Virus record (IMG/VR): IMGVR_UViG_3300043418_000114
Span: 248,001-312,000 of that record
Reading direction: 5' to 3' (one strand)
DNA length: 64,000 nt
The notes below the pieces were generated by a model. The model made no database searches, was not told the origin of the DNA, and saw only the letters and a program-made list of their open reading frames with translations. Shown here one piece after another: positions 14,980 to 46,518 of this stretch. How positions within the stretch are numbered: the first letter of the stretch is position 1; each line of letters begins with the position of its first letter. A program made the position numbers and the translations under genes.

Positions 14980-15417
14980 TTATAATTTTCTTTTTATTGT
15001 GTCTATGTCTAGCTTTTTGGCTATTGTAAAATCTTGTAGATTATTACTTAGCACAGTATCGGGCCAGTAATTAAGTATATATTTTGCGCCATCAACCAAG
15101 ACTAATACAACATCTTCACTATTATCGTCGGTTGCAATACAAAAGTCAACATCTTGTACATCCGTTAATAGTAAAGTATATATCATGCCCAATCCACGTG
15201 CGATTGTGCAATATTCATTGTCTGATAGTAGTTCCCACGGTCCAGGCCATGCTGATGGCTCTTGTGGATGCAGATAATGAGAGACAATAGGCGCAGATTG
15301 CCACCACTTGTCTATTTCTAGACATTTGGTTTCCAAATCCGCTTCTTTGAGTTTGTTTCGTAGATCGAACCAGTTTTGAAGTCTGGTTTCGTAATTGAGT
15401 TGGAATACGTTTATCAC
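14980..15417 (-). CDS. hypothetical phage protein
   Basis: 145-aa ORF with a GTG start, preceded by an ATAAGTA motif. Confidence 0.7.
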   Translation of the reverse strand: MINVFQLNYETRLQNWFDLRNKLKEADLETKCLEIDKWWQSAPIVSHYLHPQEPSAWPGPWELLSDNEYCTIARGLGMIYTLLLTDVQDVDFCIATDDNSEDVVLVLVDGAKYILNYWPDTVLSNNLQDFTIAKKLDIDTIKRKL

Positions 15418-15458
15418 ACTGTACTTATCTTTCGAGAAGCACAGTGTGATTTTGTGTA

Positions 15459-18400
15459 TTAGAATCGACCCACAGCTACTTCGATGACACCACTAGCGTC
15501 TTTGAAGTTTTCTAGTGATTTGCCGATGATAGTACCAGCTCGTGCCATGTTGTTTGCGATAGCGTGTCCGTTGCCAGCGGCAACTAACAAGTCACCCTTG
15601 TACACTGGACCCAATACTTTACATGGTACACGACCTTGTAGGGCAATATCAGCTACATACTCGGCTTCTAGTGCGCTATTCATTGTATATGCGGCATCAG
15701 TTGTTACAACACCAGCGACACGGAACGAGTCTGCTTCGGTTGATAGGGTAACTTCATGCTCACCACCAAACACTAGGACTGTACCAGGCTCATAATTAGC
15801 GTCAGCAACATACTTTTCTGACAAGTCAGCGTATGTAGCGTTCCACTTAGAACCCGCAGTCAATGTCCAGTTACCAGTTAAATAACCAGCAGTAACGTTA
15901 GCGCCTGAAGTCAAGTTGGTTGTTGTTAGTGCGGCATTACCTGAAACAGTTGTTGTACCCGAAACAGTCAAACTAGTTAATGTACCAACTGACGTAATGT
16001 TAGGTTGTGCGGCAGTCGAAACAGTGGCCGCATAACTTGATGTTGGGACACTTAATGTACCTGTTACGTTAGCACCAGGGATACCTGTCAAGCCAGTTGC
16101 TGGACCATAGAATGTTGAGATGACGTTGCCAGCGTTGACGTTACCAGTAACACTCAATGATGATAGTGTGCCAACTGACGTAATGTTAGGCTGTGCCGCC
16201 GTTGTTACAGTTGCCGCTGTTCCACTTACTGAGCCTGTGATTGTGGTTGTGACTGACAGACCTGATAGCGTACCTAAAGATGTAATATTAGGCTGAGCAG
16301 ATGTTGTGATCGTACCAGTTAGTAAAGTACCAGTGACGTTGCCACCAGTGATATTGCCAGTTGCAGAAACAACACCACCTGTTACAACGTTGCCGAATGT
16401 ACCATTCCCAGTTGCACTTACAGTAGATGCGATGACTGCCGCTGTGCCAATATTGCCAATGTTTGCATTACCAGATACTGACAATGAACTTAGGGTACCT
16501 AAACTCGTGATATTAGGCTGAGCGGCACTAGTTACAGTACCAGCAACACCTGCAGTAGCTACGTTCAAGTTTGCAACCTGGGTTGTAGATGTTACAACAA
16601 ATGGAGCAGTGCCAGTAGCAATAGAAGAAACATATTGACCAGCAGTGCCAATGTTACCCACGTTAGCATTACCTGAAACACTTAATGAAGTTAACGTGCC
16701 TACTGCTGTCAAATTAGAAGATACAACTGTTGAATTCAATGCAGAGCCACTTAGCGTTCCGGCTGGTGCAACCACAACCGCAGTATTTGCCGCTGTCAAT
16801 TGGCCTTGTTGATTAACAGTGAATGTTGGGATAGCAGTTGAACTACCATAACTTGCGGCAGTGACTGCTGTATTAGATATACTGAACTGTGTGCCAGTTA
16901 ATGTTAATCCTGTACCAGCAGTATAAGTACCAGCGCCAGAGAACTGAGTGAATGTAATTGGTGTAGTACCGACGGTAACTGGGTTAGTATCTGTACAGAC
17001 CCAACCAGTGTTATCGTTAACGGTACCGTCTGCAATGAAGACGAATGCACCTGCAATTTCTTGACCTGGGCTATTGTCAAAGTCAGTTGAACGAGTCAAC
17101 ACAGTGCCACTAGTATACGTGTAAATACCATTCCATACTGTATTCGCTTCATCTTTAACTAGAATACGTGTTCCTGAACTTGCAATGTTGACGCCGTCGA
17201 TTGTTGTATATGAACCAGTTGTGGTCAATGTAGCACCGACACCACCTGTACCGTTGTTATATGTAACAGTACCACCGGATGCTGATGCTAGTGTGCCTGT
17301 TGTACCGGCGACCGCAGATTGTTTAACTGATAGACCTTGTGCAGTTGTATCAACATAGTTCTTTGTAGCAACGTCAGTAGATGCAACGGGTTCTGCCACT
17401 GTAGTGATACGTGCATTGGCAACGTCAACTGTACCTGTGCCAGACGGTACCAACAAGATGCTCTTGTTAGTGCCAATTGCAGAGATTGTTAAGTTACTCG
17501 ATACACTTGATAGTGCGTTAGCTTTTACCGTACCGTTAGCGGTGATGTTTGCATTTGAGTAAATGCTACCATCAGTGCCAATATTGGCAATTTGAACGTT
17601 ACCAACACCATTATTGAAGAATACGAATCCATCTGCCGCGCCTGCACTGAAACGTGCATTGCCAGATGAGTAATCAGCTACTAAGCCGTCTGAAAATGCG
17701 CCGCCATATGTGCTTGTTGATATTAAACCATTAGCGACTGAGATATAACCGCCACCTGTGATGTTGCCGGTGGCACTGATTGCACCGCCGGAATAGATGT
17801 TACCTGCAATACCTACGCCGCCGCCAACGCGCAATGCGCCAGTTGATGTAGAAGTTGAAACTGTTGTCGGTTTGACATAGAATTGATTGCTTGCGTTAAT
17901 GAAACGCATAACTTCATTGTTGGACAAGAAACCGTTAGTAGCAAATACAATATCGTTAGTTGTTCCAGTTGAACCGGTTGCTATGACTAAATTACCGCCT
18001 AATCCAGTTCCAGTTACCGCTTTAGAGAAGATATAACCATCATTCTTACCAGTAATAGTATAATTGGCATCACTGAAATTTGAACCAGTGAAGCCCATGT
18101 CCATCCAGCCAGATATGTCATTCCCGTTATCACTATATGCGATCCAGTCAGCACTACCAGTTGCTGTTTGATTTAACAATGCGCCTTGGATATATTGAGC
18201 GCCAGCGTTTTCTGCAACAATTGTAGGTGAGGTTAGTGCAGTAGTTGTGGCACCATTACCTACATATAAAACACCGCCAATTACACCATTGCCATTTGCA
18301 GTCAGACTGCCATTGGCAATAATATTTCCTCCGATACCTACACCGCCGCCAACACGTAATGCGCCAGTGGCAGATGTAGTTGCCGCGGTTGTTGTCTCGA

Positions 18401-20225: not shown

Positions 20226-20333
20226 TTTTCTTCCTTGCGTATGCGGTGTTGTGCTATTATATTATTTATCATTTCCACAACTTGACTGTATCCATTTATT
20301 GTTGGACCCGTCGTTATTCCTTTACTACAGTGT

Positions 20334-20702
20334 TTATTTTTCACCCATGTCTACCCAATTATTTGTATAATCGTCCCAACAATATAGGTTACCATCATCG
20401 GGATATGGTATAGGCGGTTGCCAAGTATATGTTTCGTTGTTCAACACCCAACTTGTATAAGGACGTGGTTCTAAAAATGCATCTCTCAACTGGTTATATA
20501 AAAATCCAACTCCTGCCATAGTTTTACGAAAACTACCATTGTATGATGTTTGTTTCCATGTAGTATCATTTCCATAAAGTGATTTACAAAACTCTATTCC
20601 TTTTTCTTCTGATTCACTGCCGTTGTCTAGCAGTTCATTATTGTGTACCACAATAACTTTTATCACTATATTGTTTTCGTTAAGTTGTGCAAAATGTGCC
20701 AT
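20334..20702 (-). CDS. small phage tail-associated protein (MAHFA family)
   Basis: MAHFAQLNENNIV...WKQTSYN...F..P.PY.SW....W.PP.P.P..G..Y.WD, a pattern commonly found beside Gly-rich fibre genes. Confidence 0.7.
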   Translation of the reverse strand: MAHFAQLNENNIVIKVIVVHNNELLDNGSESEEKGIEFCKSLYGNDTTWKQTSYNGSFRKTMAGVGFLYNQLRDAFLEPRPYTSWVLNNETYTWQPPIPYPDDGNLYCWDDYTNNWVDMGEK

Positions 20703-20731
20703 ATGTTATCCTTTAAAATATATAAAATATT

Positions 20732-22213
20732 TTAGAAAGTTATACTCCCTGAGCCGGTGAACGTATAAAATTTATATAAACCCGAGGTAGTAACTGTTGG
20801 AGAGCCGGTAGTCGATACGGCTGTAACTCCACTACTCACTCGTATGATTACAACACCTGACCCACCGGCAAGACCATTTGTGACGCCGCTATATCCGCCA
20901 CCACCGCCACCACCGCCAGTATTAGTTGTACCTGTTGTATAAGTCGTGCCCGATCCTGCTCCTTGTCCACCGCCGCCATATCCACCAGCACCGCCGGTAG
21001 AAGTATTGCGTTCAGTGCCAGCTCCACCACCACCTGCCAAATAATATGTAGTTGACACTAGTTGGCCCACAGTCGATCCTGAAAATGGATTTGCTACACC
21101 AACGCCTCCGTACCCGGCTGAGGTTTGACTATTAGCTGGTGTTTGTCCTGCTCCGCCTGCACCACCGCCGCCGCCACCGTTCTGAGAAGCATTGCCGCCG
21201 CTTGGGTTACCTGTTCCGCCGTCATATCCTTGTCGTGGTGCATCTACATAGCTTGATCCAGGATAAACACCCTTTCCGCCTACGCCACCTGAGATTGGGT
21301 TACTAGAAGCGCCGCCACCTGAACCGCCACCTGCTCCACCTTGATATACACCGTTATATCCGCCGCCGCCACCGCCGCCATATGCAGTAACCGTAGTCAA
21401 ACCTGTTCCCGATATGACAGAATTACTGCCAGTGCCAGACTGTGGAGAGCTGGTCGCTGTGCCGCCTGCACCAACAGTAATTGTGTAAGTTACCCCAGGA
21501 GTCATTGTGACGCTAGTAGCAGTTAAATAACCGCCAGCGCCACCGCCACCTGTGCCATAATTACCATATCCACCGCCTCCGCCACCTGCAACTACAACAT
21601 AATCTACAAGAACAACGCTAATAACATTTATACTAAATGCCCTCGCCACGCTTTGATTATAATTGTTAGTAGCAGTTATAGTAAAATTGTATGTTGTTTG
21701 TGTAGTTGGTGTTCCTGTAATTGCCCCTGTACTAGAATTTAGACTTAATCCTGTTGGCAAGGAACCTGATGTAACACTATAAGTTATACCTGTGCCGGTA
21801 GCACTAACCGATTGTGAATATGAGTAACCTACAGTTCCCGCAGGTAACGCTCCGGCGGCAGTTACCCAAACCGGTGGAGTGTTAAATAATATCCCTGCTG
21901 GCTTTGTAGCATTTGTACCATCTGTATTATAAAATAATAGATTGTATGTTCCAATGCTGGTTGCAGGGGTTGTAAATGTTAAACTTGTGCTATTGCCATA
22001 TGTTGTAGTACATGCAGTAGAATTGATGTATACTGTGATACCAGAGTTAAATCCAGTACCCGTGACTGTTATTGTTTGACTACCAGCCGGATCTGCCGCG
22101 GTAGCACTATTTGGATATGTTACTGCTGTTACCGCAACAGTCGGTGCTACGCCACTAGCAGTTAATACTGGCCCAAGTGCTGTTGATTGTAGTGTGGTTA
22201 AACTTTGCGCCAT
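20732..22213 (-). CDS. virion protein with IPT/TIG-like, Ig-like and glycine-rich domains
   Basis: ITVTGTGF (IPT-like), GSLPTGLSLNSSTGAITGTPT (putative Ig repeat) and VVAGGGGGG...GGSGVVIIR (Gly-rich domain). Confidence 0.75.
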   Translation of the reverse strand: MAQSLTTLQSTALGPVLTASGVAPTVAVTAVTYPNSATAADPAGSQTITVTGTGFNSGITVYINSTACTTTYGNSTSLTFTTPATSIGTYNLLFYNTDGTNATKPAGILFNTPPVWVTAAGALPAGTVGYSYSQSVSATGTGITYSVTSGSLPTGLSLNSSTGAITGTPTTQTTYNFTITATNNYNQSVARAFSINVISVVLVDYVVVAGGGGGGYGNYGTGGGGAGGYLTATSVTMTPGVTYTITVGAGGTATSSPQSGTGSNSVISGTGLTTVTAYGGGGGGGYNGVYQGGAGGGSGGGASSNPISGGVGGKGVYPGSSYVDAPRQGYDGGTGNPSGGNASQNGGGGGGAGGAGQTPANSQTSAGYGGVGVANPFSGSTVGQLVSTTYYLAGGGGAGTERNTSTGGAGGYGGGGQGAGSGTTYTTGTTNTGGGGGGGGYSGVTNGLAGGSGVVIIRVSSGVTAVSTTGSPTVTTSGLYKFYTFTGSGSITF

Positions 22214-27999: not shown

Positions 28000-30900
28000 T
28001 TATATCAATCTAATTTGTGTTGTCCATACGGTTGAGTTACTACTTGAAGGTGTAACTTGTAAGTTAACGAATGAGTTACCACCAGAGCTTGTAATTGCAA
28101 CAAGAAGCGCTCCTGTTGAACCACCTATGCGCTGACCTCCAAACTGGCCCCAGTCAACTGATGTACCATCAGTGACTGCTTGAATCGTACAGACACTGTA
28201 TTTAGATCCAACAGAGTCAGTTGATTTAACAAAATACTCGATACCAGTGATAGTTGAACTTGTTAATTGAATGTTCGCAATTGTTTGATTAGCCGTGATC
28301 GCTGATGTTGTTACAGTGAATGCTACGGTGCTTGTGTTGCCAACAACTACACTGCCGTTGGTCACTAAATTGCCAGCGATTACGTTACCAGTTACTGTTA
28401 CTAGACCACCAGTTGCGATATTACCAAATGTACCATTGCCGGTTACTGTAATTAGACCAGATGTGCCTAAATTACCTACATTGGCATTCCCTGTTGAGCT
28501 TAGTGTTGTTGCATATAAACCAGTTGTGCCAACATTACCAATATTCGCATTGCCTGTGACAGATAGAACACCACCTGTTACTAAGTTGCCACCTTGAATA
28601 TTACCTGTTGCGGTAATCAATCCAGCAGTACCTATGTTACCAATGTTAGCGTTGCCAGTTACTGTCAATACACCACTAGTTACAAGATTACCACCAATAA
28701 CGTTACCAGTAGCAGTTACGATACCAGCTGTTCCGATGTTGCCAATATTAGCATTACCAGTTACAGATAAGGCGCCGGATGTGTTTAAATTTCCACCATC
28801 AATGTTGCCAGTGGCGGTGATTAGGCCTGCAGTGCCTAAGTTACCTACATTAGCATTACCAGTTACGGTCAAAATACCTGCCGTTCCGATATTGCCTAAG
28901 TTTGCATTCGCGGTGGCGGAGATTGTTGTTGCGTAAACGCCGGTGGTGTCTAAGTTACCAACGTTGGCATTGCCAGTTACAGTCAGAATACCTGCTGTGC
29001 CAATGTTGCCAATGTTTGCGTTACCTGTTACTGTCAAGACACCACTTGTTACTAGATTAGCACCGACTACATTGCCGCCTGCTGTTACTAATCCTGTTGT
29101 TGTTAAGTTGCCGCCAGTAATGTTGCCAGTAGCAGTTACAACACCCGCAGTGCCAATATTACCTATGTTTGCGTTGCCAGAAACACTTAGACTTGTTAGT
29201 GTACCGACCGATGTAATAGTTGGTTGAGCAGTGTTGACACTAAACACAGTGCCTGTTAGTGTTAAACCAGTGCCAGCTTGATATGTACCTGCACCAGAGA
29301 ACTGGGTGAATGTAATATCAGTGGTGCCAACTGTAATCGGTTGATTTGTTGTACATACCCAACCAGTATCAGCTTGAGTTTGACCGCCTTCTACAAATGT
29401 GAAGGCACTTGACATTTCAGGGCCGGCGTCAAAGTCAGTTGAACGTGTCAACTGATACGATGTTGTTGCGTTACCTGCACGAGTAACAACGTAGATACCA
29501 TTGTATGGACTTGCGTTACTCGTACCTTCGTTCTTAATCAAAACACGTTGTGTTGCTGATACTGCATTGCCGTCAATAGACAATGCGCCATTTGTAGTAC
29601 CTGTCAGTGTCGCGCCTACACCACTAGTACCGTTATTGTATGTGTATGTTGGAAGAGCCGCGGCTGTAGCATAGAATACTGACGCCTTTGGATCTAGGCC
29701 AGTTGCAACAGTATCAACGTAATCTTTGGTTGCCGCATCTTGTGCGTTTACTGGGTTAGCTACGTCTGTTATCCAAACGTTACCCATGCTCAAATTGCCA
29801 CCAAAACTACCTGTTCCGGTTGCAACAAAATTATTTGTACCTAGATTGCCAGTGTTGGCATTGCCGCCTACACTTAATACACCTGTTGTGTTAAGATTAG
29901 CACCTTGAATATTACCAGTAGCAGTAATTAAACCACCTGTGCCGATATTGCCAATGTTAGCGTTACCGCCAACTGATAGAATGCCACCCGTATTGACGTT
30001 GCCAAATAGACCGTTGCCAGTGGCAGATACTGCACCGACAGTGTTTACATTGCCGAATGTACCGTTACCAGTAGCAGTTACTACACCTACGGTTGTTAAG
30101 TTGCCACCAGTGATATTACCAGTAGCAGTAATTAATCCACCTGTGCCGATATTACCTACGTTAGCATTGCCAGTTGCACTGATTGTGCCACTAGTGATGA
30201 CATTGCCAAATGTACCGTTACCAGTAGCAGTAATTAGTCCTGCTGTGCCTAGATTGCCTACATTGGCATTGCCGCTTGCAGAGAGAGTCGTTGCGAAGAC
30301 ACCAGTTGTATTTACGTTCGCAACATTGGCATTGCCACTTGCTGATATCATACCAACTGTGTTGATATTGCCACCATCTATATTGCCAGTGGCAGTTACA
30401 ACACCAGCAGTACCAATATTGCCCACATTGGCATTACCAGTTACTGTTAGAATACCACTAGTAGCAATGTTGCCACCGGTAATGTTGCCAGTAGCAGTGA
30501 TTATGCCAGCCGTACCGATGTTGCCGATGTTAGCATTACCAGTTACAGACAGAGCACCGCCCGTGTTTAAATTGCCGCCGCCGATGTTGCCAACAGCGGT
30601 GATTAATCCACTAGTGCCTAAGTTGCCCACGTTTGCATTAGCAGTGGAGCTTAATGACGTTGCATATACACCAGTTGTGCCTAGATTTCCTACGTTAGCA
30701 TTACCGCCAACACTCAATGCTCCGTTAGTATATAAGTTGCCACCAGATATGCTACCTGTACTGCTGATTGTGCCGGCAACATTTATGCCGGTAGTTGTTA
30801 CTAATACAACGTTCGCTGTTCCACCCACAGAGATAGCAACGTTGTCATTGATTGTTGGGATGCTAATATTTGAACTACCATTAGCAAGAGGACCCATCAA

Positions 30901-31347
30901 GTTACCGGCATAAATGTTGCCAGTAGCTGTAATAATTCGTGTGCCTAAGTTGCCTAAGTTAGCGTTACCACTTACACTCAAATAACCGTCGATGTTTGCA
31001 CCGGTTCCAGTGAACACAGCTAAGTTACTAGTACCCGCAGGTGATAATGTAATATTACCGTTGTTGTAAACTTGTAAATTTGCGTTACCGTTACTTAGAC
31101 TTGATGTACTGATGGTAACAAAGCTAAGGACGCCCGAACCATCTGTCTGAATAACTTGACCACTAGTACCACCAGTGATGTGTATATTAGCTATGTTTCC
31201 TAATGCTACGTTGCTGGTAGCTGTTAAGTTGATAACACCATTGGCAGTAATACTGCCTGTTGTAATATCACCGTTAGCTAAAATAATGTTGGATGCTATC
31301 TCGCCTACTGAGAAGCCACCAACTGAGTTCAATGCTTTAATTGCCAT
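28000..31347 (-). CDS. fibre-like virion structural protein (1115 aa)
   Basis: LNSVGGFSVG N-terminus, dozens of TGNANxGNxGTxG repeats, TKDYVD module. Confidence 0.72.
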   Translation of the reverse strand: MAIKALNSVGGFSVGEIASNIILANGDITTGSITANGVINLTATSNVALGNIANIHITGGTSGQVIQTDGSGVLSFVTISTSSLSNGNANLQVYNNGNITLSPAGTSNLAVFTGTGANIDGYLSVSGNANLGNLGTRIITATGNIYAGNLMGPLANGSSNISIPTINDNVAISVGGTANVVLVTTTGINVAGTISSTGSISGGNLYTNGALSVGGNANVGNLGTTGVYATSLSSTANANVGNLGTSGLITAVGNIGGGNLNTGGALSVTGNANIGNIGTAGIITATGNITGGNIATSGILTVTGNANVGNIGTAGVVTATGNIDGGNINTVGMISASGNANVANVNTTGVFATTLSASGNANVGNLGTAGLITATGNGTFGNVITSGTISATGNANVGNIGTGGLITATGNITGGNLTTVGVVTATGNGTFGNVNTVGAVSATGNGLFGNVNTGGILSVGGNANIGNIGTGGLITATGNIQGANLNTTGVLSVGGNANTGNLGTNNFVATGTGSFGGNLSMGNVWITDVANPVNAQDAATKDYVDTVATGLDPKASVFYATAAALPTYTYNNGTSGVGATLTGTTNGALSIDGNAVSATQRVLIKNEGTSNASPYNGIYVVTRAGNATTSYQLTRSTDFDAGPEMSSAFTFVEGGQTQADTGWVCTTNQPITVGTTDITFTQFSGAGTYQAGTGLTLTGTVFSVNTAQPTITSVGTLTSLSVSGNANIGNIGTAGVVTATGNITGGNLTTTGLVTAGGNVVGANLVTSGVLTVTGNANIGNIGTAGILTVTGNANVGNLDTTGVYATTISATANANLGNIGTAGILTVTGNANVGNLGTAGLITATGNIDGGNLNTSGALSVTGNANIGNIGTAGIVTATGNVIGGNLVTSGVLTVTGNANIGNIGTAGLITATGNIQGGNLVTGGVLSVTGNANIGNVGTTGLYATTLSSTGNANVGNLGTSGLITVTGNGTFGNIATGGLVTVTGNVIAGNLVTNGSVVVGNTSTVAFTVTTSAITANQTIANIQLTSSTITGIEYFVKSTDSVGSKYSVCTIQAVTDGTSVDWGQFGGQRIGGSTGALLVAITSSGGNSFVNLQVTPSSSNSTVWTTQIRLI

Positions 31348-31382
31348 TTTGACGTCCTTGTTATTATATTTATCTTAAAATC

Positions 31383-32957
31383 TTATTGGGTATACTTGGT
31401 AATCATCATTTTGTATGTCACCAGATTGTTCGTTGCACATACAATGTATAAATCCATAGATGGTGGATTAACTACATCACCTGGATTGAATGTAATGCCG
31501 AATGTGCCTACACCCCCATTGATTTGTAGACCCGCATATTCGTTAAACTGCACTTGATCTTGATAACAAAGTGCTGAAATCTTCAACGATTGACGCAATG
31601 AGCTAATAGGCTCAGTTGCAATAATCATATAGTCTGCACCGTATAGTCCATCAATTGGAATACTGAATAAGGTTTGATTTCCAGTGGTATCAGTCGTTGC
31701 AAAATATACACTAGTCGTACCAAACTCAAATGATCCTGATCCAATTTGAAATGAGTTTGCTATTAGTAATCCACCAACTTGTACTTCATGTGATACTTGG
31801 TTATATGTGAAGTTAGGACTACCCGCAAAGCCGCCGTTATAATTGAACTGTACGTTTGTGTTGGATCCACCTGGGTTGCCACCACCGCCACCACCTGCAT
31901 CTGTCCATGACAAGTTGCCGGTGCCGTCTGTTGTCATAACTTGACCAGTAAAGCCACCAAAGATTTTTAAATTGTCAATCTCGCCAATCTCAACGTCTGC
32001 TCCGTTAAAATCAACATTACCGTTTGCCGTTAGCTTGCCTGAATTAATCGTTAAATTGCCGCCAACTGATGCATTGCCAGTAACAAATAAGTTACCGGTT
32101 GTTGTTCTATTTGATGCTTGTACGTTAGCACCAGAAATGTTTCCTGTTACTACTAAGCTAGTTAGCGCGCCAACGCTTGTGATATTAGGCTGTGCGGCTT
32201 GTAGTACAGTGTTTGCCACTTCTGCAACAGGAACGATACCTGTTACATTTGCGCCGTTGATATGATTCAACTGAGCACCGTTACCCGTAAAGCCCTGTGC
32301 TTGCACGTTGCCAGTAACACCTAAACTAATCAGTGTACCAACACTAGTGATATTAGGTTGTGCGCTTGCTGATACAGTTTGTGTAGATAATGATGTTGTT
32401 GCTGTACCAGTCAAGTTACCAGTTACGTTTGTGACTGTGATATATTGTACGCCGAGTGTGTTAGTATCACTGTTGTAGGTAAAGCCTGGATCACCTCCAA
32501 ATTCACCTGCATTGTTAAACTGCACTTGAGTGTTTGATCCACCAGGTGATCCGTTTCCGCCGCCACCTCCCGCCGCGGCCCATGTCAACTGACCTAGGCC
32601 ATCCGTTTGTAGAAAGTATCCATTCAATCCACCAGTAATAGAAACACTCTCTATTGGACCCAAAAATGTCTCACCGTTGACTGTGAAGTTTGTCGTAGTC
32701 AACATACTATTTGCACTATCAAACGTCAAGTTAGCACTGGCACCTAATCCTGTGCCGTTGTTAAATTGAACTTGCGTATTTGATCCAGCTACGTATGGTT
32801 GGCCGTTAGCATATCGTAGATTATTAGTAAGTAGTGTGTTAGCTATGATGTAGTTTGAGTTTACATTACCTGTATATCGACCATTGGCGTCGATAATAGG
32901 AATAGCCGGTATACCTACTGAGTAGCCACTAATTGAGTTGAAAAGTTCAGATGCCAT
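31383..32957 (-). CDS. fibre-like virion structural protein
   Basis: FNSISGYSVG N-terminus, three GSNTxVQFN motifs, AQPNITSVG repeats. Confidence 0.72.
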   Translation of the reverse strand: MASELFNSISGYSVGIPAIPIIDANGRYTGNVNSNYIIANTLLTNNLRYANGQPYVAGSNTQVQFNNGTGLGASANLTFDSANSMLTTTNFTVNGETFLGPIESVSITGGLNGYFLQTDGLGQLTWAAAGGGGGNGSPGGSNTQVQFNNAGEFGGDPGFTYNSDTNTLGVQYITVTNVTGNLTGTATTSLSTQTVSASAQPNITSVGTLISLGVTGNVQAQGFTGNGAQLNHINGANVTGIVPVAEVANTVLQAAQPNITSVGALTSLVVTGNISGANVQASNRTTTGNLFVTGNASVGGNLTINSGKLTANGNVDFNGADVEIGEIDNLKIFGGFTGQVMTTDGTGNLSWTDAGGGGGGNPGGSNTNVQFNYNGGFAGSPNFTYNQVSHEVQVGGLLIANSFQIGSGSFEFGTTSVYFATTDTTGNQTLFSIPIDGLYGADYMIIATEPISSLRQSLKISALCYQDQVQFNEYAGLQINGGVGTFGITFNPGDVVNPPSMDLYIVCATNNLVTYKMMITKYTQ

Positions 32958-33049
32958 GTCTTTTATCCTGTTATATAATATTTATCAATTTTGGGTTTTT
33001 TAAAAGACGGTTTAAGTTACCTCGATAATCTTTATTTCATAAATAAAAG

Positions 33050-33415
33050 ATGCTTACTCAACAACCACATCGTCCTTTCTGTGAACAATGCAAAGTTAAT
33101 TTGGCGAAGGCTAATGGTATCAGTAAGCATGGATTTAAAAAATGGCACAAGTACTGTACCACATGTGCCAAGGCAGTGTATAATCCAAAGAATGGATACT
33201 TGCTTAACAAAAAACAAGAGTGTGATAGATGTGGGTTTGTGCCAGAAGATAGTTGTCAGTTAGATATTGCTTATATCGATGGCAATAGTAAGAATAAAAC
33301 TGATTCAAATATACAAACGCTATGCGCCAACTGCAACAGACTGCATCAAAAAAGTTTACGAGAAAAGAAAAAGTCCATTCTCAATATCACAGTTGACGCG
33401 GACGTAACGATTTAG
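33050..33415 (+). CDS. Zn-finger/HNH-like protein with a degenerate active site
   Basis: CxxC pairs (CEQC, CTTC, CDRC, CANC). LDIAYIDGN...SNIQTLCANCN aligns with the usual HHIDGN...NL..LC..CH pattern. Confidence 0.7.
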   Translation: MLTQQPHRPFCEQCKVNLAKANGISKHGFKKWHKYCTTCAKAVYNPKNGYLLNKKQECDRCGFVPEDSCQLDIAYIDGNSKNKTDSNIQTLCANCNRLHQKSLREKKKSILNITVDADVTI

Positions 33416-33783
33416 TAGCTTTTTTCTTCGACAATAGTTGAACCAACTAGTAGGTTGATTTCACGTTTAATTCTAGCACGAACATCGTTTTTTAGGTAGA
33501 CTTGTCTTGCGGCATTAACGAATCCATCACCAAACGCCTTTTCATCTTCCATGGCTCGTTTATACGTTTCGATGTGCCACAGTTCCTGATTGATATCATA
33601 TAAGTCATTTCGTAAATTTGTGATATCTGGCAATTCTAGGTTATCCAGAATACTAATCAATTGAACGTGTTCTTTCAATACGTTTTCACGCTTAGATTCA
33701 TCTCTAATGAATTGCAGTTTTAATTCTAAAATTGTGATTTTATCGATCAGTTCGCCAACTGAAATGGGTGCTAGTACTATCAT
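33412..33783 (-). CDS. DUF6165-like hypothetical protein
   Basis: PISVGELIDKITILELK...LW.IE...F...AR.VY..ND.R..IK..IN...GS..VEEKSY. Confidence 0.75.
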   Translation of the reverse strand: MIVLAPISVGELIDKITILELKLQFIRDESKRENVLKEHVQLISILDNLELPDITNLRNDLYDINQELWHIETYKRAMEDEKAFGDGFVNAARQVYLKNDVRARIKREINLLVGSTIVEEKSY

Positions 33784-33787: not shown

Positions 33788-34543
33788 TTACTTATGTTTT
33801 ACAAAGTCCCAGATAGATTTCTGTGCTTCAATGTATTGATCATATATCGCATACGCAGATATTGGTATTGGTCTGTTTGTAAGATTGCTGATAGTTTCTA
33901 ATGTCGTTTGTTTACTACTCAGTATGTCACTAAACTGGATTAATGTTACGTTTGTAATATCAACCATGTCGCCAATCTTGAAAGGATAATCAGTAACTTG
34001 TTGATGTTTATTTGCTCTATCCATAATCAGCTTCTGTATCATATCTGATGTTATACTTGGATCGAATGGATCTTTAGCACCATTGAAATAGGTTGGCGAT
34101 TCTTGTTGCCATAGTTGATGCCAATATGGAATTTCGTGATAGCTATCTACCTGAACTTTAAAATAGAAATTAGCTTCTATTAATAGTCTATCTTTCATAG
34201 GATCAATTTGTATGTATAAGACTTTACCTTTAGGATATTTCTCAAAGAATAAGTCGTGATCGATCACATAATGCTCAGTGAGTATTATTGGCAATTCTGG
34301 ATTTTCTGGATTCGTTTCTAAAAATCTAGAAAATAATTGCCCGTCTTTGAGTGTTGTTTTATCAAAATTCAGATCAAGTACTTGATTGGTTCCATTTCTC
34401 GTCACGTGAGCATTGCCATTTTTAGAAAACTCCACTTGATTGAGTGTGTTTGTGAACTCGGCTATTAACATACAAATAAATGATCCACTTGTTCCAGGTA
34501 GATATGATACAGTATATGCTTCGGTATCTGGGAATATTTTCAT
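33788..34543 (-). CDS. hypothetical protein with N-terminal beta-strand/Gly loop
   Basis: 251-aa AT-rich ORF; YTVSYLPGTSGSFI near the N-terminus. Confidence 0.65.
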   Translation of the reverse strand: MKIFPDTEAYTVSYLPGTSGSFICMLIAEFTNTLNQVEFSKNGNAHVTRNGTNQVLDLNFDKTTLKDGQLFSRFLETNPENPELPIILTEHYVIDHDLFFEKYPKGKVLYIQIDPMKDRLLIEANFYFKVQVDSYHEIPYWHQLWQQESPTYFNGAKDPFDPSITSDMIQKLIMDRANKHQQVTDYPFKIGDMVDITNVTLIQFSDILSSKQTTLETISNLTNRPIPISAYAIYDQYIEAQKSIWDFVKHK

Positions 34544-34568
34544 GTTTTATTTAATCGTAAATATACAC

Positions 34569-35303
34569 ATGGCTAACATTAAAAAGTTATATATTGTATT
34601 GGGAACTGGTGGTTCCAGGAAAGATTTCCTTACAGGATGGTTGGGCAAGTTGCCGTCTTTCATAGACACTAAATGGTATATTGACTTAACTTGTGGAGCC
34701 AGTTATAGCGATGCACATCGACTAAAGATTGTCGATACATCACCCAAACATACATTTGTTCATCTATTGGAAGAAATGGATATTAGATTCAGTGATGATG
34801 CTATATTAAACTTAGCCGTTAATTGTCATGGCATTAATCTAGCAGATAATCTAAAAGGATTATCAAAAAGTCAATATGAAATATTGAATGTAAACGTTAA
34901 TCCCAACACAAATGATACATTCTGGCAAAACTTTGTGAAGAATTTCCTTCACTATAATACTAGTATTGACCAGTTAGATGATTACATGAATCAATCTATT
35001 CTACAATATATACCACAAGTCGGTGACACACAAGAAGAAATAATATCTAATTTCTTCTCCAAAGATAATCCTAATTTTGAATCAAAGATGCTTATATCGA
35101 ACTACAATCAAGATGAAGTTATACAATTTGATTATAACGAGTTATTCGTGAAGTCAGGCAGTAGAATATTGTGTGATAGGCTAAAGCTACATGCACCAGA
35201 CAACGTACATGCATTCTGGGATGCAATGCTACCATTTGCTGATCCTCCTCCTGAAGTGGAATTCTTAGGCAAAGTTTGGAAAAAATCAGACTATATCAAA
35301 TAA
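34569..35303 (+). CDS. hypothetical protein with N-terminal beta-strand/Gly loop
   Basis: I moved the start to ATG 34569 (MANIKKLYIVLGTGGSRKDF) because the track start overlaps the opposite-strand gene. Confidence 0.65.
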   Translation: MANIKKLYIVLGTGGSRKDFLTGWLGKLPSFIDTKWYIDLTCGASYSDAHRLKIVDTSPKHTFVHLLEEMDIRFSDDAILNLAVNCHGINLADNLKGLSKSQYEILNVNVNPNTNDTFWQNFVKNFLHYNTSIDQLDDYMNQSILQYIPQVGDTQEEIISNFFSKDNPNFESKMLISNYNQDEVIQFDYNELFVKSGSRILCDRLKLHAPDNVHAFWDAMLPFADPPPEVEFLGKVWKKSDYIK

Positions 35304-37709: not shown

Positions 37710-37721
37710 GCTTTGTTCCCC

Positions 37722-38357: not shown

Positions 38358-38374
38358 TTTCTCTCAGATTCCGA

Positions 38375-39341: not shown

Positions 39342-39569
39342 TTAAACGGTTGGTTGCTCTTGAACTGCCGACGCGCCGTATTGTTCGTGAACTTTCTTAA
39401 GATATTGCTTCTTTTCGTAGTTACGAACGTCCAACATCTTACGTAACTTGCGAATTTGACGTAAGGTTAATTTAGTTTTGCGACTTTCTTTCCATCTAGG
39501 GCTTGAGTTATCAGATGCAATATCTTGATAGCCCTGCACAGGCGCATCGAACATTTCCATTAGTTTCAT
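39342..39569 (-). CDS. small basic head-module protein (75 aa)
   Basis: I moved the start to ATG 39569 (MKLMEMFD...RKTKLTLRQIRKLRK) to avoid overlap with the portal gene. ATAAATA lies 5 nt upstream. Confidence 0.7.
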   Translation of the reverse strand: MKLMEMFDAPVQGYQDIASDNSSPRWKESRKTKLTLRQIRKLRKMLDVRNYEKKQYLKKVHEQYGASAVQEQPTV

Positions 39570-39588
39570 GCTTATATTTATCTTTCTA

Positions 39589-41379
39589 TTACATTCCAGT
39601 GCCACCAGGTGCTGGATTACCTGGCATTGGGCCGGCATCGCCTACTGCACCTGCTACTTCAGGACCCATCATGGTTTCATCGCCCATGTCTTCCATATCT
39701 TCCATCTCGTCAGCAGTGTTTTGATCGGTTTCAATGTCTCCAACAGATACGCCAACGCTACGTAGATCGTTACCCTTAGGATCAATGTCGGTGTCTTTGT
39801 TTTGTTCTTCACGCCACATTTTTTCGTTCTTATTAATTTCTTCTTCGGACAATCCTAAGAAACGTTCTAGCGCAAAACGCTTAGAGATATATGGATATTG
39901 TTCAATCGCAGTGAATGAACTCATACGTGCTGTATCTAACTCACTTTGGCGATATGCGGCAAAGTTTTGTGGAGGATTAAAGTTTAGAGAGAACAATGAA
40001 CTATCAATATTGAAACCTCTCCAACGCAAGAATAATTTAAATTCTTCGTCTAGCTTTTGACTGATATACTTCTGTAGACGTTCGCAATATTGATTGAAAC
40101 GGAACTCTTGAATCATCGCAGTACCAACACGACCATCGCTTAGAGGAGTTGTGTTATCATCAGGGCCTGTTGGCAAGTATGATGATGGCACACGCAAACC
40201 ACGAGCTAGTCTGTTGTTAAAGTATTTCAAGTCGTCAATCTCACCCAAGTTTTGACCACCTGGTAACAAGTCAACACTTGAACCACGACCATCAGCAGTG
40301 ACTGGGAAGAAGTAATCTTCGTTCATTGATAGTGGGTTGTATGTGGCGTCCAATACACTTGAACCACCTTGACTTGATGGAATACGGCGTTGGTGAATTT
40401 CGTTTTTGATACGATCAACGAATGCCATAGCCATGTGAGCAGGCATGTTACCAACGTCAATCTTGAACACTCGGCGCTCAGGCGCACGTTGTACACGATA
40501 GATAAGAACCGCGTCTTCTAGCAATTCTTTTTGCTTGTATACTTTGAAAATGTTTTCAAGTACAGACTGTCCAAATGGCCAGAAACGATCTAGGCCTTCG
40601 GTTAAACTCAAGTGGACAACGTGTTTAGCATCGATTGCGCTCTCAGTCTGTCCTAAGGTAAAACGGGATCCTGTCGTGTTATACGGCATCGCAGGTACAG
40701 TGTAACCAGATGATGGTGATCCACCGCCTGTGCCACCTAAACCTGTAGCTGGGTTTGCGGCAAAGTCTGTGTTAGTCTTTTGTGCCGCAGTTAAATTCTG
40801 TAAGTTAATGTTAATGTCTTTGATAACGTATTGCTCTGGCTTCTTACCTTCACTCTCGTTAACGATAACTTTGATGACCTTAGTCATGTCGATCCAGAAT
40901 AACTTAAAGTTTTCTGGGTCACGAATGAATACTTGATCACCGTATTTCAATGTATTACGGAATAATTTGAACGTTCTAGTATCAAATTCATTCAACTTAC
41001 ACCATTGAATCAATTGTGTTTTTAACAATTCGATTTCATGTGGTGTTGGATCTTCGTTGAATTCTAGATCAAATGGAGTCTTGTTATGTTCGTTTTTCTG
41101 TGTAGAGAACTCAGCGATAATGTCCAAACATGCGTTAATTTCAGCATCTACGTCCATCATTTCATACTGGTTATAACGCTCCACACGGTTAGGATGACCT
41201 GTATAAACTTCTGGCAACTTACTGCCGTAGTTTTTATAACCGAAAGAATCATTGTTCCAACCGCCAGTTGGCATGCCATTCTGACCTGGGCTACCATTCC
41301 ATGCGCCGCTATTGCTATTAGCACCGGAGATAGGGCTGGACACACCAGCTTTGTTCGTAAAACGTTTTTTATATGACAT
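39589..41379 (-). CDS. gp20: portal protein (T4 gp20-like)
   Basis: YEMMDVDAEI, EDAVLIYRVQRAPERRVFKIDVGNMP, EDYFFP..GRG..V..LPGGQNLGEIDDLKYF. Confidence 0.96.
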   Translation of the reverse strand: MSYKKRFTNKAGVSSPISGANSNSGAWNGSPGQNGMPTGGWNNDSFGYKNYGSKLPEVYTGHPNRVERYNQYEMMDVDAEINACLDIIAEFSTQKNEHNKTPFDLEFNEDPTPHEIELLKTQLIQWCKLNEFDTRTFKLFRNTLKYGDQVFIRDPENFKLFWIDMTKVIKVIVNESEGKKPEQYVIKDININLQNLTAAQKTNTDFAANPATGLGGTGGGSPSSGYTVPAMPYNTTGSRFTLGQTESAIDAKHVVHLSLTEGLDRFWPFGQSVLENIFKVYKQKELLEDAVLIYRVQRAPERRVFKIDVGNMPAHMAMAFVDRIKNEIHQRRIPSSQGGSSVLDATYNPLSMNEDYFFPVTADGRGSSVDLLPGGQNLGEIDDLKYFNNRLARGLRVPSSYLPTGPDDNTTPLSDGRVGTAMIQEFRFNQYCERLQKYISQKLDEEFKLFLRWRGFNIDSSLFSLNFNPPQNFAAYRQSELDTARMSSFTAIEQYPYISKRFALERFLGLSEEEINKNEKMWREEQNKDTDIDPKGNDLRSVGVSVGDIETDQNTADEMEDMEDMGDETMMGPEVAGAVGDAGPMPGNPAPGGTGM

Positions 41380-41408
41380 ATAGTGATTGACCTGACTAGT
41401 ATTTAGCG

Positions 41409-44237: not shown

Positions 44238-44303
44238 ATTTCACCAATAAATAGTTATCACGTATTTATGCGTCCAGATTTGTCAAATATTTAGGAGAAA
44301 CAA

Positions 44304-45125
44304 ATGAACAACCCACTACGCCAGTATTTCCGCAGACCAGCCCTGTTTATCTCTTTGCCTAGCAAAGGTCAGCACTATCCGGCTGGTGCGATTGAAGTTC
44401 CAGAAAATGGAGAATTTCCAGTCTATCCAATGACTGCTATTGATGAAATTACTGCCAAAACGCCTGATGCACTTTTTAACGGCAGTGCAGTAGCGGAGAT
44501 TATTAGAAGTTGTGTGCCTGCAATCAAAGACCCATGGTCTATTCCAGCTACTGACTTAGATGCCATTTTGATCGGCATTCGTGCCGCATCTACTGGCAGT
44601 GAGATGGACATTGAATCTGTCTGTCCTGCATGTGAAGAAGTCAGTAAGTACGGCGTGAATCTAGTAGGTCTTCTAAACGATATCAAGGGTGATGCATATC
44701 TAGAAACTCTAAAACTAGGTGAACTAGTATTCCACTTTAAGCCACTAAGCTATCGTGAAGTGAATCAAGGCAATCTAGGTCAATTTGAACTCCAACGTGA
44801 AATTGCACAGTTAGAATCAATTGAAGATGACGTAGAGCGCACAAAGAAGTCCAATGAAACCATGAAGAAATTGACGGAAATGAATATTGGATTCATGGCT
44901 AATACTATCTCTAAGATTGATTTGCCAAATGAATCAGTAACTGAAAATGAGTTTATCGTCGAATATCTACACGGCTGTGATCGTGCATCATATGATGCCA
45001 TTCGTACCCAGATCGTAAAGATGCGTGAATCTGTGAACATCAAGCCACTGAAAATCAAATGTGTAGCTTGTAATAACGAATACAATCAACCACTAGCATT
45101 GAATGTAACTGATTTTTTCGTATAA
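44304..45125 (+). CDS. baseplate hub assembly / tail chaperone protein (T4 gp26-like)
   Basis: NPLRQYFRRP...LPSKG, YPMTAIDE, D.DAILIGIR.AS.G, CPAC and C-terminal C..C. Strong SD AGGAG. Confidence 0.8.
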   Translation: MNNPLRQYFRRPALFISLPSKGQHYPAGAIEVPENGEFPVYPMTAIDEITAKTPDALFNGSAVAEIIRSCVPAIKDPWSIPATDLDAILIGIRAASTGSEMDIESVCPACEEVSKYGVNLVGLLNDIKGDAYLETLKLGELVFHFKPLSYREVNQGNLGQFELQREIAQLESIEDDVERTKKSNETMKKLTEMNIGFMANTISKIDLPNESVTENEFIVEYLHGCDRASYDAIRTQIVKMRESVNIKPLKIKCVACNNEYNQPLALNVTDFFV

Positions 45126-45349
45126 GGCTTCTATCTCTACCACCTGAAAAGATCAAGGCATTAATAGAAGGCATGAAAAATGAGTGCAATGACGTTAAGA
45201 AAAACGCACTCAGATTATCTTGGTATATGAGAGGTGGTGTTTCATATGAGGATGTATTGAATATGTCCCAGACGGAGAGAGAAGCCATCGGAGCCATTAT
45301 TGAAGATAACTTAGAAACAACTAAGAAATCTCAGTTGCCATTCTTCTGA
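45113..45349 (+). CDS. gp51-like frame, probably reached by -1 frameshift (not in the ORF track)
   Basis: The -1 frame reads FFRIRLLSLPPEKIKALIEGMKNECNDVKKNALRLSWYMRGGVSYEDVLNMSQTEREAIGAIIEDNLETTKKSQLPFF*. It opens exactly at T TTT TTC (45113-45119); the first ATG is at 45173. Confidence 0.72.
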   Translation, partial: FFRIRLLSLPPEKIKALIEGMKNECNDVKKNALRLSWYMRGGVSYEDVLNMSQTEREAIGAIIEDNLETTKKSQLPFF

Positions 45350-45362
45350 TACACAAACAAAT

Positions 45363-45384
45363 ATAGGTACGGAGACGTACCTAT
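45363..45384 (+). terminator. hairpin with GAGA tetraloop, likely terminator of the gp26/gp51-like unit
   Basis: ATAGGTACG-GAGA-CGTACCTAT followed by TCATTTAT. Confidence 0.6.
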
Positions 45385-45559
45385 TCATTTATCTAAATTA
45401 CCAAATTTCTATTTTGATTTTATTGTTGATTTAACACTTATTACCACTTAGAGATGAACTACGTTCATCTAACAACTCACTTCGTTCGTTGTTAATTTTC
45501 ATTCTTATTAATTCTAAACACTTTTATTAACTTATTTTAACTATCCATCTTTGACATAC

Positions 45560-45925
45560 ACTTGCCGCTTTGAAGACGTAGTAGTGCTTCCAGCACTACT
45601 ACAAAAAAAGGTCATTTGCCATGCCCGTCATTCGCATCATTTTTCTCCCGTTTAATTGCCGTCTTTGTGACACTAAACGCTACCGGTTGCTCTGTAAAGT
45701 TTATGGAGCTGTAGTGAGCCTATCAGATTAAACCAATGGGTTCTGACGACTCCGCAACGCACATTCTATAGCTCAAAAATGAAGTCGCTATAGACTTGTT
45801 GAAGGTTCGCTTTGTCGATTGCCTTCTCGGTATGCCGATGAATATTGCTACTCATCTATACTCCAGAATCTGACGGCACAGCCGAACTGTACAGTCTCAA
45901 GGAGGACTCCCAACGGAGCCAACGA
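45560..45925 (-). ncRNA. putative structured non-coding RNA (family not recognised)
   Basis: No long ORF on its own strand. At least five hairpins, and three pair fully (through G-U) only on the minus strand; one has a GCAA tetraloop. Visibly GC-richer than the flanks. Confidence 0.55.
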
Positions 45926-45958
45926 ATTGTTTATTTTAGATGTTAGATATAAGTGGGG

Positions 45959-46483
45959 TTATTTTGACTTGGTGTCGGTTGTTGAATATGTTTTAAGTAT
46001 TTCAGTGTTATGCATAAAGAAACTATCAAATTCCATGATTATCCAGTCTCCGTATTTTTTTGATGTATAATAGACAAAATTATCAGTCTTCCATGTTAGT
46101 TTGCTTTGAACAGCAATGTAACGACCTTTGCGATTAAACTTCATAAACAGAAGATTAACATCGTCAGGGTCAGCTACTTCTAGAAGTTGATCCAGCCAAG
46201 CATCTAATACTTTACATTCCCCTGTAAGTAAAAGATGAAATGGGAAGTCAGCATAGAATTTACATTCAATGTTCATTTTACTGAACGATTCACCAGGAAT
46301 AACATCGCCCTTGAAAGTGCGAATCTGTCCCTCGTGTAGTACTTCTTTGCGTACTTGATTCTTCCCACCCACATAAGCACCAGAACCAGGAGCGCGGATG
46401 AATGATTCACCATATGCCTCTGATAGATATTTTGCGATTTCTCGTTCAAAACCTGAACCTTTTGCTTTCTGTGGACTTGTCAT
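45959..46483 (-). CDS. Holliday-junction resolvase-like PD-(D/E)XK nuclease
   Basis: KAKGSGFEREIAKYL, GDVI and IECK. Confidence 0.8.
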   Translation of the reverse strand: MTSPQKAKGSGFEREIAKYLSEAYGESFIRAPGSGAYVGGKNQVRKEVLHEGQIRTFKGDVIPGESFSKMNIECKFYADFPFHLLLTGECKVLDAWLDQLLEVADPDDVNLLFMKFNRKGRYIAVQSKLTWKTDNFVYYTSKKYGDWIIMEFDSFFMHNTEILKTYSTTDTKSK

Positions 46484-46518
46484 ACTCTTACTTATGCAGG
46501 TAAATTATCTGTTAAAAA

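Follow-up and report, generated by a model that had tools for sequence, protein, structure and literature searches.

Late transcription in bacteriophage T4 depends on a lone 8-bp -10-like box, TATAAATA, which spans positions -13 to -6, lacks a -35 element and is read with the phage proteins gp55, gp33 and gp45 (PMC2988020). In the RaK2-like jumbo phages vB_PcaM_CBB and GAP32, an ATAAATA motif before structural genes has been predicted to be the late promoter, in phages with a gp55-like sigma factor but with no gp33 or gp45 detected in CBB (PMC5259590). Leaderless transcripts, in turn, have been described in the Thermus phage phiYS40, a large myovirus in which most middle and late transcripts lack a leader (review PMC3594737), and in Deinococcus-Thermus, where a -10 motif lies at a fixed short distance from the ORF, TANNNT being found about 6–7 bp upstream in Deinococcus (PMC12340547). 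The lambda cI transcript from PRM is likewise leaderless. Leaderless mRNAs and T4-type late promoters are thus each established, but we found no description of the two together: a literature search for TATAAATA combined with leaderless returned no papers, and the CBB paper does not mention any fusion of its promoter to start codons or leaderless mRNAs.

We followed up a first-pass annotation of a 64,000-nt stretch (hereafter the window; positions 248,001 to 312,000 of IMG/VR record IMGVR_UViG_3300043418_000114; window coordinates are prefixed w where needed), which had noted a late-promoter motif only 4–5 nt before the start codon of seven genes. The window is part of a 364,247-bp genome of an uncultured freshwater jumbo phage related to RaK2/BF-type phages, whose major capsid protein (MCP) gene is related to those of Serratia phage BF, XbC2 and A4. 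The observation held at every one of the seven sites, and the pattern proved to be much larger, extending to about 30 genes genome-wide, of which 6–7 are in the window. With the first base of each start codon as coordinate, the sites are w15417(-) ATAAGTA-CAGT-GTG, w33050(+) ATAAATA-AAAG-ATG, w33783(-) ATAAGTA-AATCT-ATG, w34543(-) TTAAATA-AAAC-ATG, w34569(+) GTAAATA-TACAC-ATG, w39569(-) ATAAATA-TAAGC-ATG and w46483(-) ATAAGTA-AGAGT-ATG. None of the six ATG sites has a Shine-Dalgarno sequence (SD) in a systematic scan; the GTG site was outside that scan and shows none by eye.

The individual sites differ in how well they are supported. The box at 39575–39581 (-), (G)ATAAATA, lies 5 nt before the ATG of a 75-aa gene (39342–39569) just downstream of the portal gene, to which phrog_13986 aligns from residue 2. 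In 35 orthologues of this gene (44–80% aa identity), 27 have the box at a motif-to-start distance (d) of 5, 2 at d=4, 2 at d=6 and 2 at d=7, so that 31 of 35 keep it 4–6 nt from the ATG, with variable spacer letters; the two exceptions are SD-led, and one of them uses TTG. The box at 33039–33045 (+), ATAAATA, lies 4 nt before the ATG of a 121-aa HNH endonuclease gene (33050–33415; HNH by PHROG and Pfam), and 15 of 17 IMG/VR orthologues (53–76% aa identity) keep TAAATA 4–5 nt before ATG with different spacer letters. Most of these follow an A-run/hairpin/T-run, although the terminator-like hairpins are weak in several loci (0 to -12 kcal/mol) and serve only as supporting detail. The ATAAGTA box at 46489–46495 (-) lies 5 nt before the ATG of a 174-aa PDDEXK/RusA-like nuclease gene (45959–46483), to which PF24608 and phrog_244 align from residues 1–5, and the orthologue in G001, one of two environmental relatives analysed here, keeps TAAGTA-TGATT-ATG (79% aa identity).

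Two further sites form a back-to-back pair, with a TTAAATA box at 34548–34554 (-), 4 nt before the ATG of a 251-aa gene (33788–34543), and a GTAAATA box at 34557–34563 (+), 5 nt before the ATG of a 244-aa gene (34569–35303). The whole intergenic space of this divergent pair is 25 nt (34544–34568), with no SD and no room for a leader at w34543. A search for orthologues of the pair gave one distant hit (31% identity) in a different context, and none among the MCP-flanking loci of 80 relatives. The ATAAGTA box at 33789–33795 (-), 5 nt before the ATG of a 123-aa DUF6165 gene (33412–33783), overlaps the stop codon of the upstream gene and is the weakest of the ATG cases, as its orthologues do not keep the box: among the orthologous loci, L012 has a GGAG-type SD, and L015–L017 have TATAAA or TATAAT 3 nt from ATG. 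Finally, the ATAAGTA box at 15422–15428 (-) lies 4 nt before the GTG (15415–15417) of a 145-aa ORF (14980–15417), and this GTG lies in the 3' arm of a hairpin, CACACTGT-N18-ACAGTGTG. This case is atypical, because genome-wide the peak is seen for ATG only (32 ATG against 2 GTG and 2 TTG at d=4–5), although its G001 orthologue does keep ATAAGTA-GAAT-GTG.

Next, we examined the motif itself. The top enriched word upstream of genes is (T)GATAAATA, and GATAAATA occurs 43 times in the genome, 32 of them within 60 nt upstream of starts; T4's exact octamer TATAAATA is not enriched (17 occurrences against 28 for the control). No conserved positions appear further upstream than the T three bases before TAAATA, consistent with a box lacking a -35 element. 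A gp55-like late sigma factor gene (305 aa), the presumed reader of the box, lies in the window at 50255–51172 (-), supported by tblastn with T4 gp55 (E=8.6e-6), by phrog_12791, 'sigma factor for late transcription' (E=1.8e-71), and by phrog_234 (E=1.2e-22). A search of the genome with T4 gp45, which could miss divergent homologues, returned nothing.

The box also precedes virion genes in a leadered arrangement, 15–25 nt upstream of portal, baseplate and virion structural genes that have an SD. In the window, TAAATA at 41400–41405 (-) lies 20 nt before the ATG of the portal gene (39589–41379; phrog_213, E=1e-105), and (GA)TAAATA at 59908–59913 (+) lies 20 nt before the ATG of a 1124-aa baseplate wedge gene (59934–63308). 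Similarly, GATAAATA at 32979–32986 (-) lies 21 nt before the ATG of a 524-aa gene (31383–32957) with an AGGA SD, and GATAAATA at 31367–31374 (-) lies 19 nt before the ATG of a 1115-aa gene (28000–31347) with an AAGGA SD. A gene for ribosomal protein bS21 also has the box upstream.

We subsequently tested the genome-wide distribution of motif-to-start distances, for which a peak at 4–5 nt had been predicted beforehand. The distribution is bimodal, with a sharp peak at 4–5 nt and a second hump at 17–25 nt accompanied by an SD. Using our own gene calls over the whole genome, TAA[AG]TA ends 4–6 nt before a start 23 times, whereas five hundred dinucleotide shuffles give 2.8 +/- 1.7 (maximum 9), and TAAATA is the only non-SD hexamer among the top hexamers at that offset. 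Independently of any gene caller, 384 TAA[AG]TA sites are followed by an ATG that opens at least 50 codons 13 times at d=4 and 19 times at d=5, other distances giving about 1–2, and eight control hexamers of the same composition show no comparable peak. For TAAATA alone, d=4 and d=5 together give 27 against 1.27 per position (P=7e-19). None of 38 candidates has an SD, only 6 of 38 have a downstream in-frame start with an SD within 30 codons, and in 31 of 38 the ATG is the first in-frame start after a stop. Family profiles and orthologue alignments begin at residues 1–7.

The spacing matches T4 geometry: with the box at -13 to -6, the A of the ATG falls at +1 for d=5 or at -1 for d=4. The base preceding the ATG is a pyrimidine in 40 of 45 d=5 cases and in 10 of 11 d=6 cases across three genomes, against about 47% for all starts, which is the usual -1Y/+1R signature of a start site. 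However, d=4 is nearly as common as d=5 and requires initiation one base closer to the box, and its -1 base is often G (13 of 38) rather than a pyrimidine. Some of these genes must also carry their own promoter, since two divergent pairs have only 25 nt and 41 nt between their ATGs, and gene g66011 sits about 8 nt after a strong terminator (-18 kcal/mol), an arrangement conserved in G001. The genes are unrelated to each other, only three HNH genes being weak paralogues, which led us to reject the idea that the class is one repeated mobile element.

To establish how widely the arrangement is shared, we applied the same test to other genomes. The two environmental relatives, G001 and G003, give 19 and 25 at d=4 and 5 (P=4e-11 and 2e-18), while BF gives 2 and T4 gives 3, neither significant. 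BF's two cases have annotated SD-led starts 24–27 nt downstream, and two of the three T4 cases, those compared with the annotation, lie inside the annotated genes mobB and nrdG. In 17 orthologue pairs, 10 keep the box, against 7 of 162 for other genes, and sequence identity peaks at -13 to -6. Orthologues were found to switch between box-5-ATG, box-17-SD-ATG and SD-only forms. The trait is clade-specific rather than a general T4-like feature.

Additionally, the same fusion was found for sigma-70-type promoters (TTGACA-17-TATAAT-6-ATG). TATAAT-N6-ATG peaks in the same three genomes (9, 9 and 15), with consensus -35 boxes or TGn extended -10 elements, showing that the layout is not specific to late promoters.

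The interpretation put forward in the first-pass annotation, of systematic leaderless late mRNAs with two expression tiers set by leader architecture, is supported only in part. We consider it likely that the heptamer is this phage's version of the T4-type late promoter, presumably read by host RNA polymerase carrying the gp55-like sigma factor, and that it is used in two layouts, one with a short SD-bearing leader and one fused to the ATG. In the fused layout, transcripts would begin at, or 1 nt from, the start codon, carry no SD and be translated as leaderless mRNAs through recognition of a 5'-terminal AUG by the ribosome; with the sigma-70-type promoters fused in the same way, leaderless expression would be a general trait of this phage-host system, not only a late-gene device. 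Our data directly establish the motif enrichment, the exact spacing, the absence of an SD, the position of the ATG as first in-frame start, the replication in two relatives, the conservation among orthologues and the absence of the pattern in BF and T4, whereas the start sites themselves, the late timing (by analogy only) and the translation mechanism are inferred from sequence. The two-tier idea is plausible but unproven and fits gene functions only loosely, as the fused set holds terminase, nucleases, DHFR and a methyltransferase but also three virion proteins, and DHFR is an early gene in T4. Six metatranscriptome runs contain parts of the window, and the four examined consist of assembled Logan contigs, which cannot show 5' ends; in these, contigs of the MCP cluster have far higher word depth than those over w33127–35041, but such depth cannot rank genes and is not used here as evidence for expression tiers.

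Among alternative explanations, the one that survives best, although we regard it as unlikely, is that the transcripts are leaderless but the box is read by host sigma-70 or another sigma factor as a weak -10 element (NATAAA or ATAAAT), in which case these genes would not be specifically late. In line with this, the phage clearly also uses sigma-70-type promoters fused to ATG, the set includes functions that are early in T4, such as DHFR and a methyltransferase, and the fused boxes match the extended GATAAATA consensus less well, with G two bases before TAAATA in 30% against 55% in the leadered class; with d=4, as inferred from the sequence, NATAAA would sit at -12 to -7 with A at -11. However, the core TAAATA and the preferred A before it are the same in both layouts, orthologues convert between box-5-ATG and box-17-SD-ATG using the same box, and seven fused cases carry the full GATAAATA. 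The box also lacks T at -7 or A at -11, depending on the register, and no -35 or TGn element accompanies it, unlike the TATAAT class.

Less likely still, the box may act at the RNA level as an SD-independent translation signal inside polycistronic mRNAs, for example an A/U-rich enhancer or re-initiation signal. The element occupies the position where an SD would normally be, and 17 of 23 cases lie 3–66 nt behind a same-strand gene and could therefore also be translated from read-through polycistronic RNA. Against this, it is the same sequence, with the same flanking preference, as the box found 15–25 nt upstream of SD-bearing virion genes, several cases are first genes after a divergent neighbour or a strong terminator, the spacing equals the promoter-to-start-site geometry, the -1 pyrimidine signature fits a start site, and the parallel TATAAT-N6-ATG class carries -35 boxes, which can only be DNA signals. 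The related idea that the box's TAA is simply the upstream gene's stop codon was rejected, as this holds for only 2 of 23 cases.

It is very unlikely that the box is a promoter for downstream genes only, with initiation inside or after the ATG and the adjacent gene made only from read-through RNA. Intergenic gaps are indeed short (median 14.5 nt), so that promoters placed between genes must lie near the next ATG, but compaction alone predicts a broad 0–6 nt spread, whereas the observed counts for d=0 to d=7 are 0, 1, 1, 0, 12, 15, 3 and 1, the spacing is held at 5 nt in 27 of 35 orthologues of the w39569 gene, and both members of the divergent pairs have no other source of mRNA within 25–41 nt. 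Chance in AT-rich sequence or wrongly chosen start codons, for which one could cite our crude gene caller (445 calls, with small genes missed) and the upstream in-frame ATGs found ahead of SD-led annotated starts in BF, is effectively refuted by the shuffles, control hexamers and caller-independent test, by the replication and conservation, and by the scarcity of SD-led alternatives.

A more speculative reading, which we consider unlikely, is that a clade of freshwater RaK2-like jumbo phages has rewired roughly 5–8% of its genes to leaderless expression from both early (sigma-70-type) and late (gp55-type) promoters, and that its bS21, encoded behind a late-type GATAAATA box, would remodel host ribosomes to favour these SD-less, 5'-AUG mRNAs, a phage-driven switch of initiation mode. 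The three genomes with the leaderless architecture have bS21 and the three cultured relatives without it lack bS21, but this is a single phylogenetic contrast. The best hits to the phage bS21 are short contigs binned into Polynucleobacter and Chitinophagales MAGs, which may themselves be phage DNA.

If confirmed, the position of a late promoter can choose the translation mode, a second way to set late-gene output that follows a simple sequence rule, box-N4-5-ATG or TATAAT-N6-ATG. This rule would improve start-codon and promoter annotation in uncultured jumbo phages, since SD-biased callers push such starts downstream, as our own caller did for 9 genes. Related genomes with and without the trait, and with and without a phage bS21 gene, also form a natural comparison set for studying how phages exploit or alter host translation initiation.

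Compared with T4, this phage shares a lone -10-like box without a -35 element, a gp55-family sigma factor and the placement of the box before virion genes, but differs in its consensus and in the fused class: in T4, ATAAATA-N3-6-ATG occurs 3 times against 5 for the control, the three long-ORF cases above being TAAATA-N5-ATG, and leaders are about 23–29 nt. With CBB and GAP32 it shares the core motif before structural genes and a gp55-like sigma factor, whereas the cultured relatives BF, XbC2 and A4 have only 2–4 ATAAATA-N4-5-ATG strings, equal to the control. phiYS40 infects a Thermus host, where leaderless genes are common, its promoters are not gp55-type, and it is reported to shift the host's IF2 and IF3 levels, which is comparable in logic to the proposed role of bS21; here, a search with IF3_C (PF00707) found nothing in the genome, a bS21 gene is present, and only about 5–8% of genes are of the inferred leaderless type, coexisting with a strong SD class. 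The TATAAT-N6-ATG class has the geometry of the Deinococcus-Thermus -10 motif, but in those bacteria, as for lambda cI, the host's housekeeping sigma factor is used, whereas the main class described here uses a phage late-type box with its own register of 4–5 nt after TAAATA.

The genome under study is a 364,247-bp virus record with direct terminal repeats and a G+C content of 41%, in which the 64-kb window spans G000:C1:248001-312000 (in the following, positions prefixed w refer to the window and those prefixed g to the whole genome). Its major capsid protein (MCP) gene (w35387-36583, minus strand) is 73% identical at the DNA level to those of Serratia phage BF, Yersinia phage fHe-Yen9-04 and Erwinia pEa_SNUABM phages, with shorter matches to Xanthomonas XbC2 and E. 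coli phage A4, so this is a RaK2-like jumbo myovirus. The DNA and RNA runs that contain it are freshwater metagenomes. Contigs of one metatranscriptome (X3) match the MCP gene, the adjacent phrog_10922 gene and neighbouring head genes (w35694-38500) at 100% identity, so the phage was transcriptionally active in that lake sample, while three further runs (X6, X8 and X12) contain diverged strains.

We first examined the proposal of the first-pass annotation that a late-promoter motif lies only 4–5 nt before the start codon of seven genes. This observation held, with all seven motif-spacer-start strings found at w15417, w33050, w33783, w34543, w34569, w39569 and w46483, each coordinate marking the start codon. 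To place these sites in a genome-wide context, we called genes with a crude procedure based on dicodon log-odds, greedy selection and a choice of start aware of the Shine-Dalgarno sequence (SD), which gave 445 genes without the use of an alternative genetic code. The most enriched words in the 60 nt upstream of starts are ATAAATA and GATAAATA; the latter occurs 43 times on both strands, with 32 of these occurrences upstream of starts, whereas T4's own TATAAATA is not enriched, with 17 occurrences against 28 for the reversed control. A genome-wide histogram of motif-to-start distances, which had been suggested beforehand as a test, showed that the distance from the end of TAA[AG]TA to the start codon (d) is bimodal, with one peak at 4–6 nt (23 genes) and a second at about 17–25 nt. 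Shuffling the last 30 nt while preserving dinucleotides gave 2.8 +/- 1.7 genes (maximum 9) for the first peak, and TAAATA is the only non-SD hexamer among the top hexamers at that offset. A separate word, TTCGGAGTTG, is enriched 4–6 nt before starts, upstream of genes outside the window. We also performed a caller-independent count of any ATG that opens at least 50 codons, which gave 13 cases at d=4 and 19 at d=5, against 1–2 at other distances, while eight control hexamers of the same composition showed no comparable peak. For TAAATA alone, 27 cases at d=4+5 compare with 1.27 per position (P=7e-19).

To determine whether these ATGs are real starts, we inspected 38 candidates. In 31 of 38 the ATG is the first in-frame start after a stop, none has an SD, and only 6 have any downstream in-frame start with an SD within 30 codons. 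Family profiles begin at the N-terminus for w39569, w46483, w33783, DHFR and a DNA-binding protein, and tblastn alignments to relatives start at residue 1 for most candidates. The genes are unrelated to each other, apart from three weakly similar HNH genes. The possibility that the TAA of the box merely serves as the stop codon of the upstream gene was rejected, since this is the case in only 2 of 23 genes.

Some of these genes must have their own promoter. The genes starting at w34543 and w34569 are divergent, with only 25 nt between their ATGs, and each has a box 4–5 nt away, the two boxes being separated by 4 nt. A second divergent pair, g242820 and g242862, has 41 nt between ATGs, and g66011 follows a strong bidirectional terminator (-18 kcal/mol) by about 8 nt, an arrangement that is conserved in the relative G001. 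At w15418-15451 (minus strand), an 8-bp inverted repeat, CACACTGT-N18-ACAGTGTG, has a 3' arm containing the GTG start of the 14980-15417 ORF and part of the spacer, which could occlude the start in read-through RNA but not in a transcript that starts at the box. The small HNH endonuclease gene at w33050-33415 (plus strand) has atypical codon usage (coding score -8.5), sits in varying contexts in relatives and has two weak paralogues elsewhere in the genome, so it is probably a mobile homing-type gene that carries its own fused promoter.

Next, we asked whether the arrangement is found in other phages. An MCP search found 80 environmental relatives at 78–97% amino acid identity, of which we retrieved two large metagenomic contigs whole, G001 (303 kb) and G003 (374 kb), together with BF and T4. 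TAAATA at d=4+5 before an ATG opening at least 50 codons occurs 19 times in G001 (P=4e-11) and 25 times in G003 (P=2e-18), compared with 27 in our genome, whereas the counts in BF (2) and T4 (3) are not significant. The two BF cases are upstream in-frame ATGs ahead of annotated, GGAG-led starts, and two of the three T4 cases, leaving aside a third near 113.4 kb, lie inside mobB and nrdG. In BF, XbC2 and A4, ATAAATA-N4-5-ATG strings number 2–4, equal to the control. Orthologue by orthologue, the box and its spacing persist while the spacer letters change. Of 35 orthologues of w39569, down to 45% amino acid identity, 27 have the box at d=5, 2 at d=4, 2 at d=6 and 2 at d=7, and the two exceptions are SD-led, one of them using TTG. 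The HNH gene w33050 keeps the arrangement in 15 of 17 orthologues, w46483 keeps even its TAAGTA variant in G001, and w15417 keeps ATAAGTA-N4-GTG in G001. Over all orthologue pairs, 10 of 17 fused genes keep the box, against 7 of 162 other genes, and upstream identity peaks at -13 to -6. Several orthologues switch between box-5-ATG, box-17-SD-ATG and SD-only forms, as expected if the box is the same promoter in both layouts.

Additionally, we found an extension that the first-pass annotation had not included. TATAAT followed by exactly 6 nt and an ATG that opens a long ORF is also over-represented, with 9 cases in our genome (P=1e-5), 9 in G001 (P=1e-4) and 15 in G003 (P=1e-10), while BF and T4 show no such excess. 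Many of these are textbook sigma-70 promoters, such as TTGACA-17-TATAAT-6-ATG at g33975 (plus strand), directly after a terminator; others lie at g152818(+), g157515(+), g206823(-) and g75396(-), and a further start of this full sigma-70-type class (TTGACA-17-TATAAT or TGnTATAAT) is at g68861(+). In 11 of 33 cases a TGn extended -10 element is present. These sites form a second, early-type class of putative leaderless genes. Leaderless-type fusion is therefore a property of this phage clade, and presumably of its host's translation system, at both promoter classes, and is not specifically a late-gene device. Genome-wide, many genes outside the window are preceded by a repeated early-type leader, in which TATAAT about 30 nt before the start is followed by conserved ATTCAT...AACATTT and an AAGGA SD. 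The genome also encodes a ribosomal protein bS21 (PF01165, 51.7 bits; G000:C1:168190-168408, plus strand, locus L179:1483-1698) with a GATAAATA box about 43 nt upstream. This gene is present in our genome, G001 and G003 and absent from BF, XbC2 and A4, the same split as the leaderless-type architecture; however, this co-occurrence is a single phylogenetic contrast and only a lead, and the nearest bacterial-bin homologues do not resolve the host.

The fused genes include the large terminase, a PDDEXK/RusA-like nuclease, three HNH endonucleases, DHFR, a methyltransferase, a nucleotide-sugar epimerase and a DNA-binding protein, as well as DUF6165, many unknowns and three virion structural proteins. 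The leadered genes in the window are portal, baseplate and virion proteins. This loosely fits the earlier suggestion that leader architecture sets two expression tiers, which, resting on gene functions alone, we treat as a hypothesis. A TAAGTA box also lies 23 nt upstream of a 6,067-codon ORF that starts within w63335-64000 (plus strand) and continues beyond the window to about G000 329.5 kb. The MCP gene itself has no exact TAAATA box; within w36584-36625 (minus strand) it has CTATAAAAAC 22 nt before the start plus an AGGAG SD, and the nearest exact box on that strand is about 35 nt upstream of w39208, so the head genes may be one operon.

Taken together, the reading of these sites as late promoters that give leaderless mRNAs is partly supported. 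What the sequences show directly is the enrichment of the box, its spacing, the lack of an SD and the persistence of the layout among relatives, while the transcription start sites, the late timing and leaderless translation are inferred from sequence alone. In line with a late promoter, the window encodes a gp55-like sigma factor (w50255-51172), and the leadered class (15–25 nt, n=40) has the consensus tGA-TAAATA, usually with an SD, and precedes portal, baseplate wedge and virion structural genes. Across three genomes, the base before the ATG is a pyrimidine in 40 of 45 d=5 cases and 10 of 11 d=6 cases, against about 47% for all starts, which fits the usual preference for a pyrimidine at -1 and a purine at +1 of start sites; however, d=4 cases do not show this preference, with G at -1 in 13 of 38, a difference that we cannot explain. 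The same core was predicted as the late promoter of the relatives CBB and GAP32 (PMC5259590). In T4, the box occupies -13 to -6 (PMC2988020), the sixth base after the box is therefore +1, and a 5-nt spacer puts the A of the ATG at +1.
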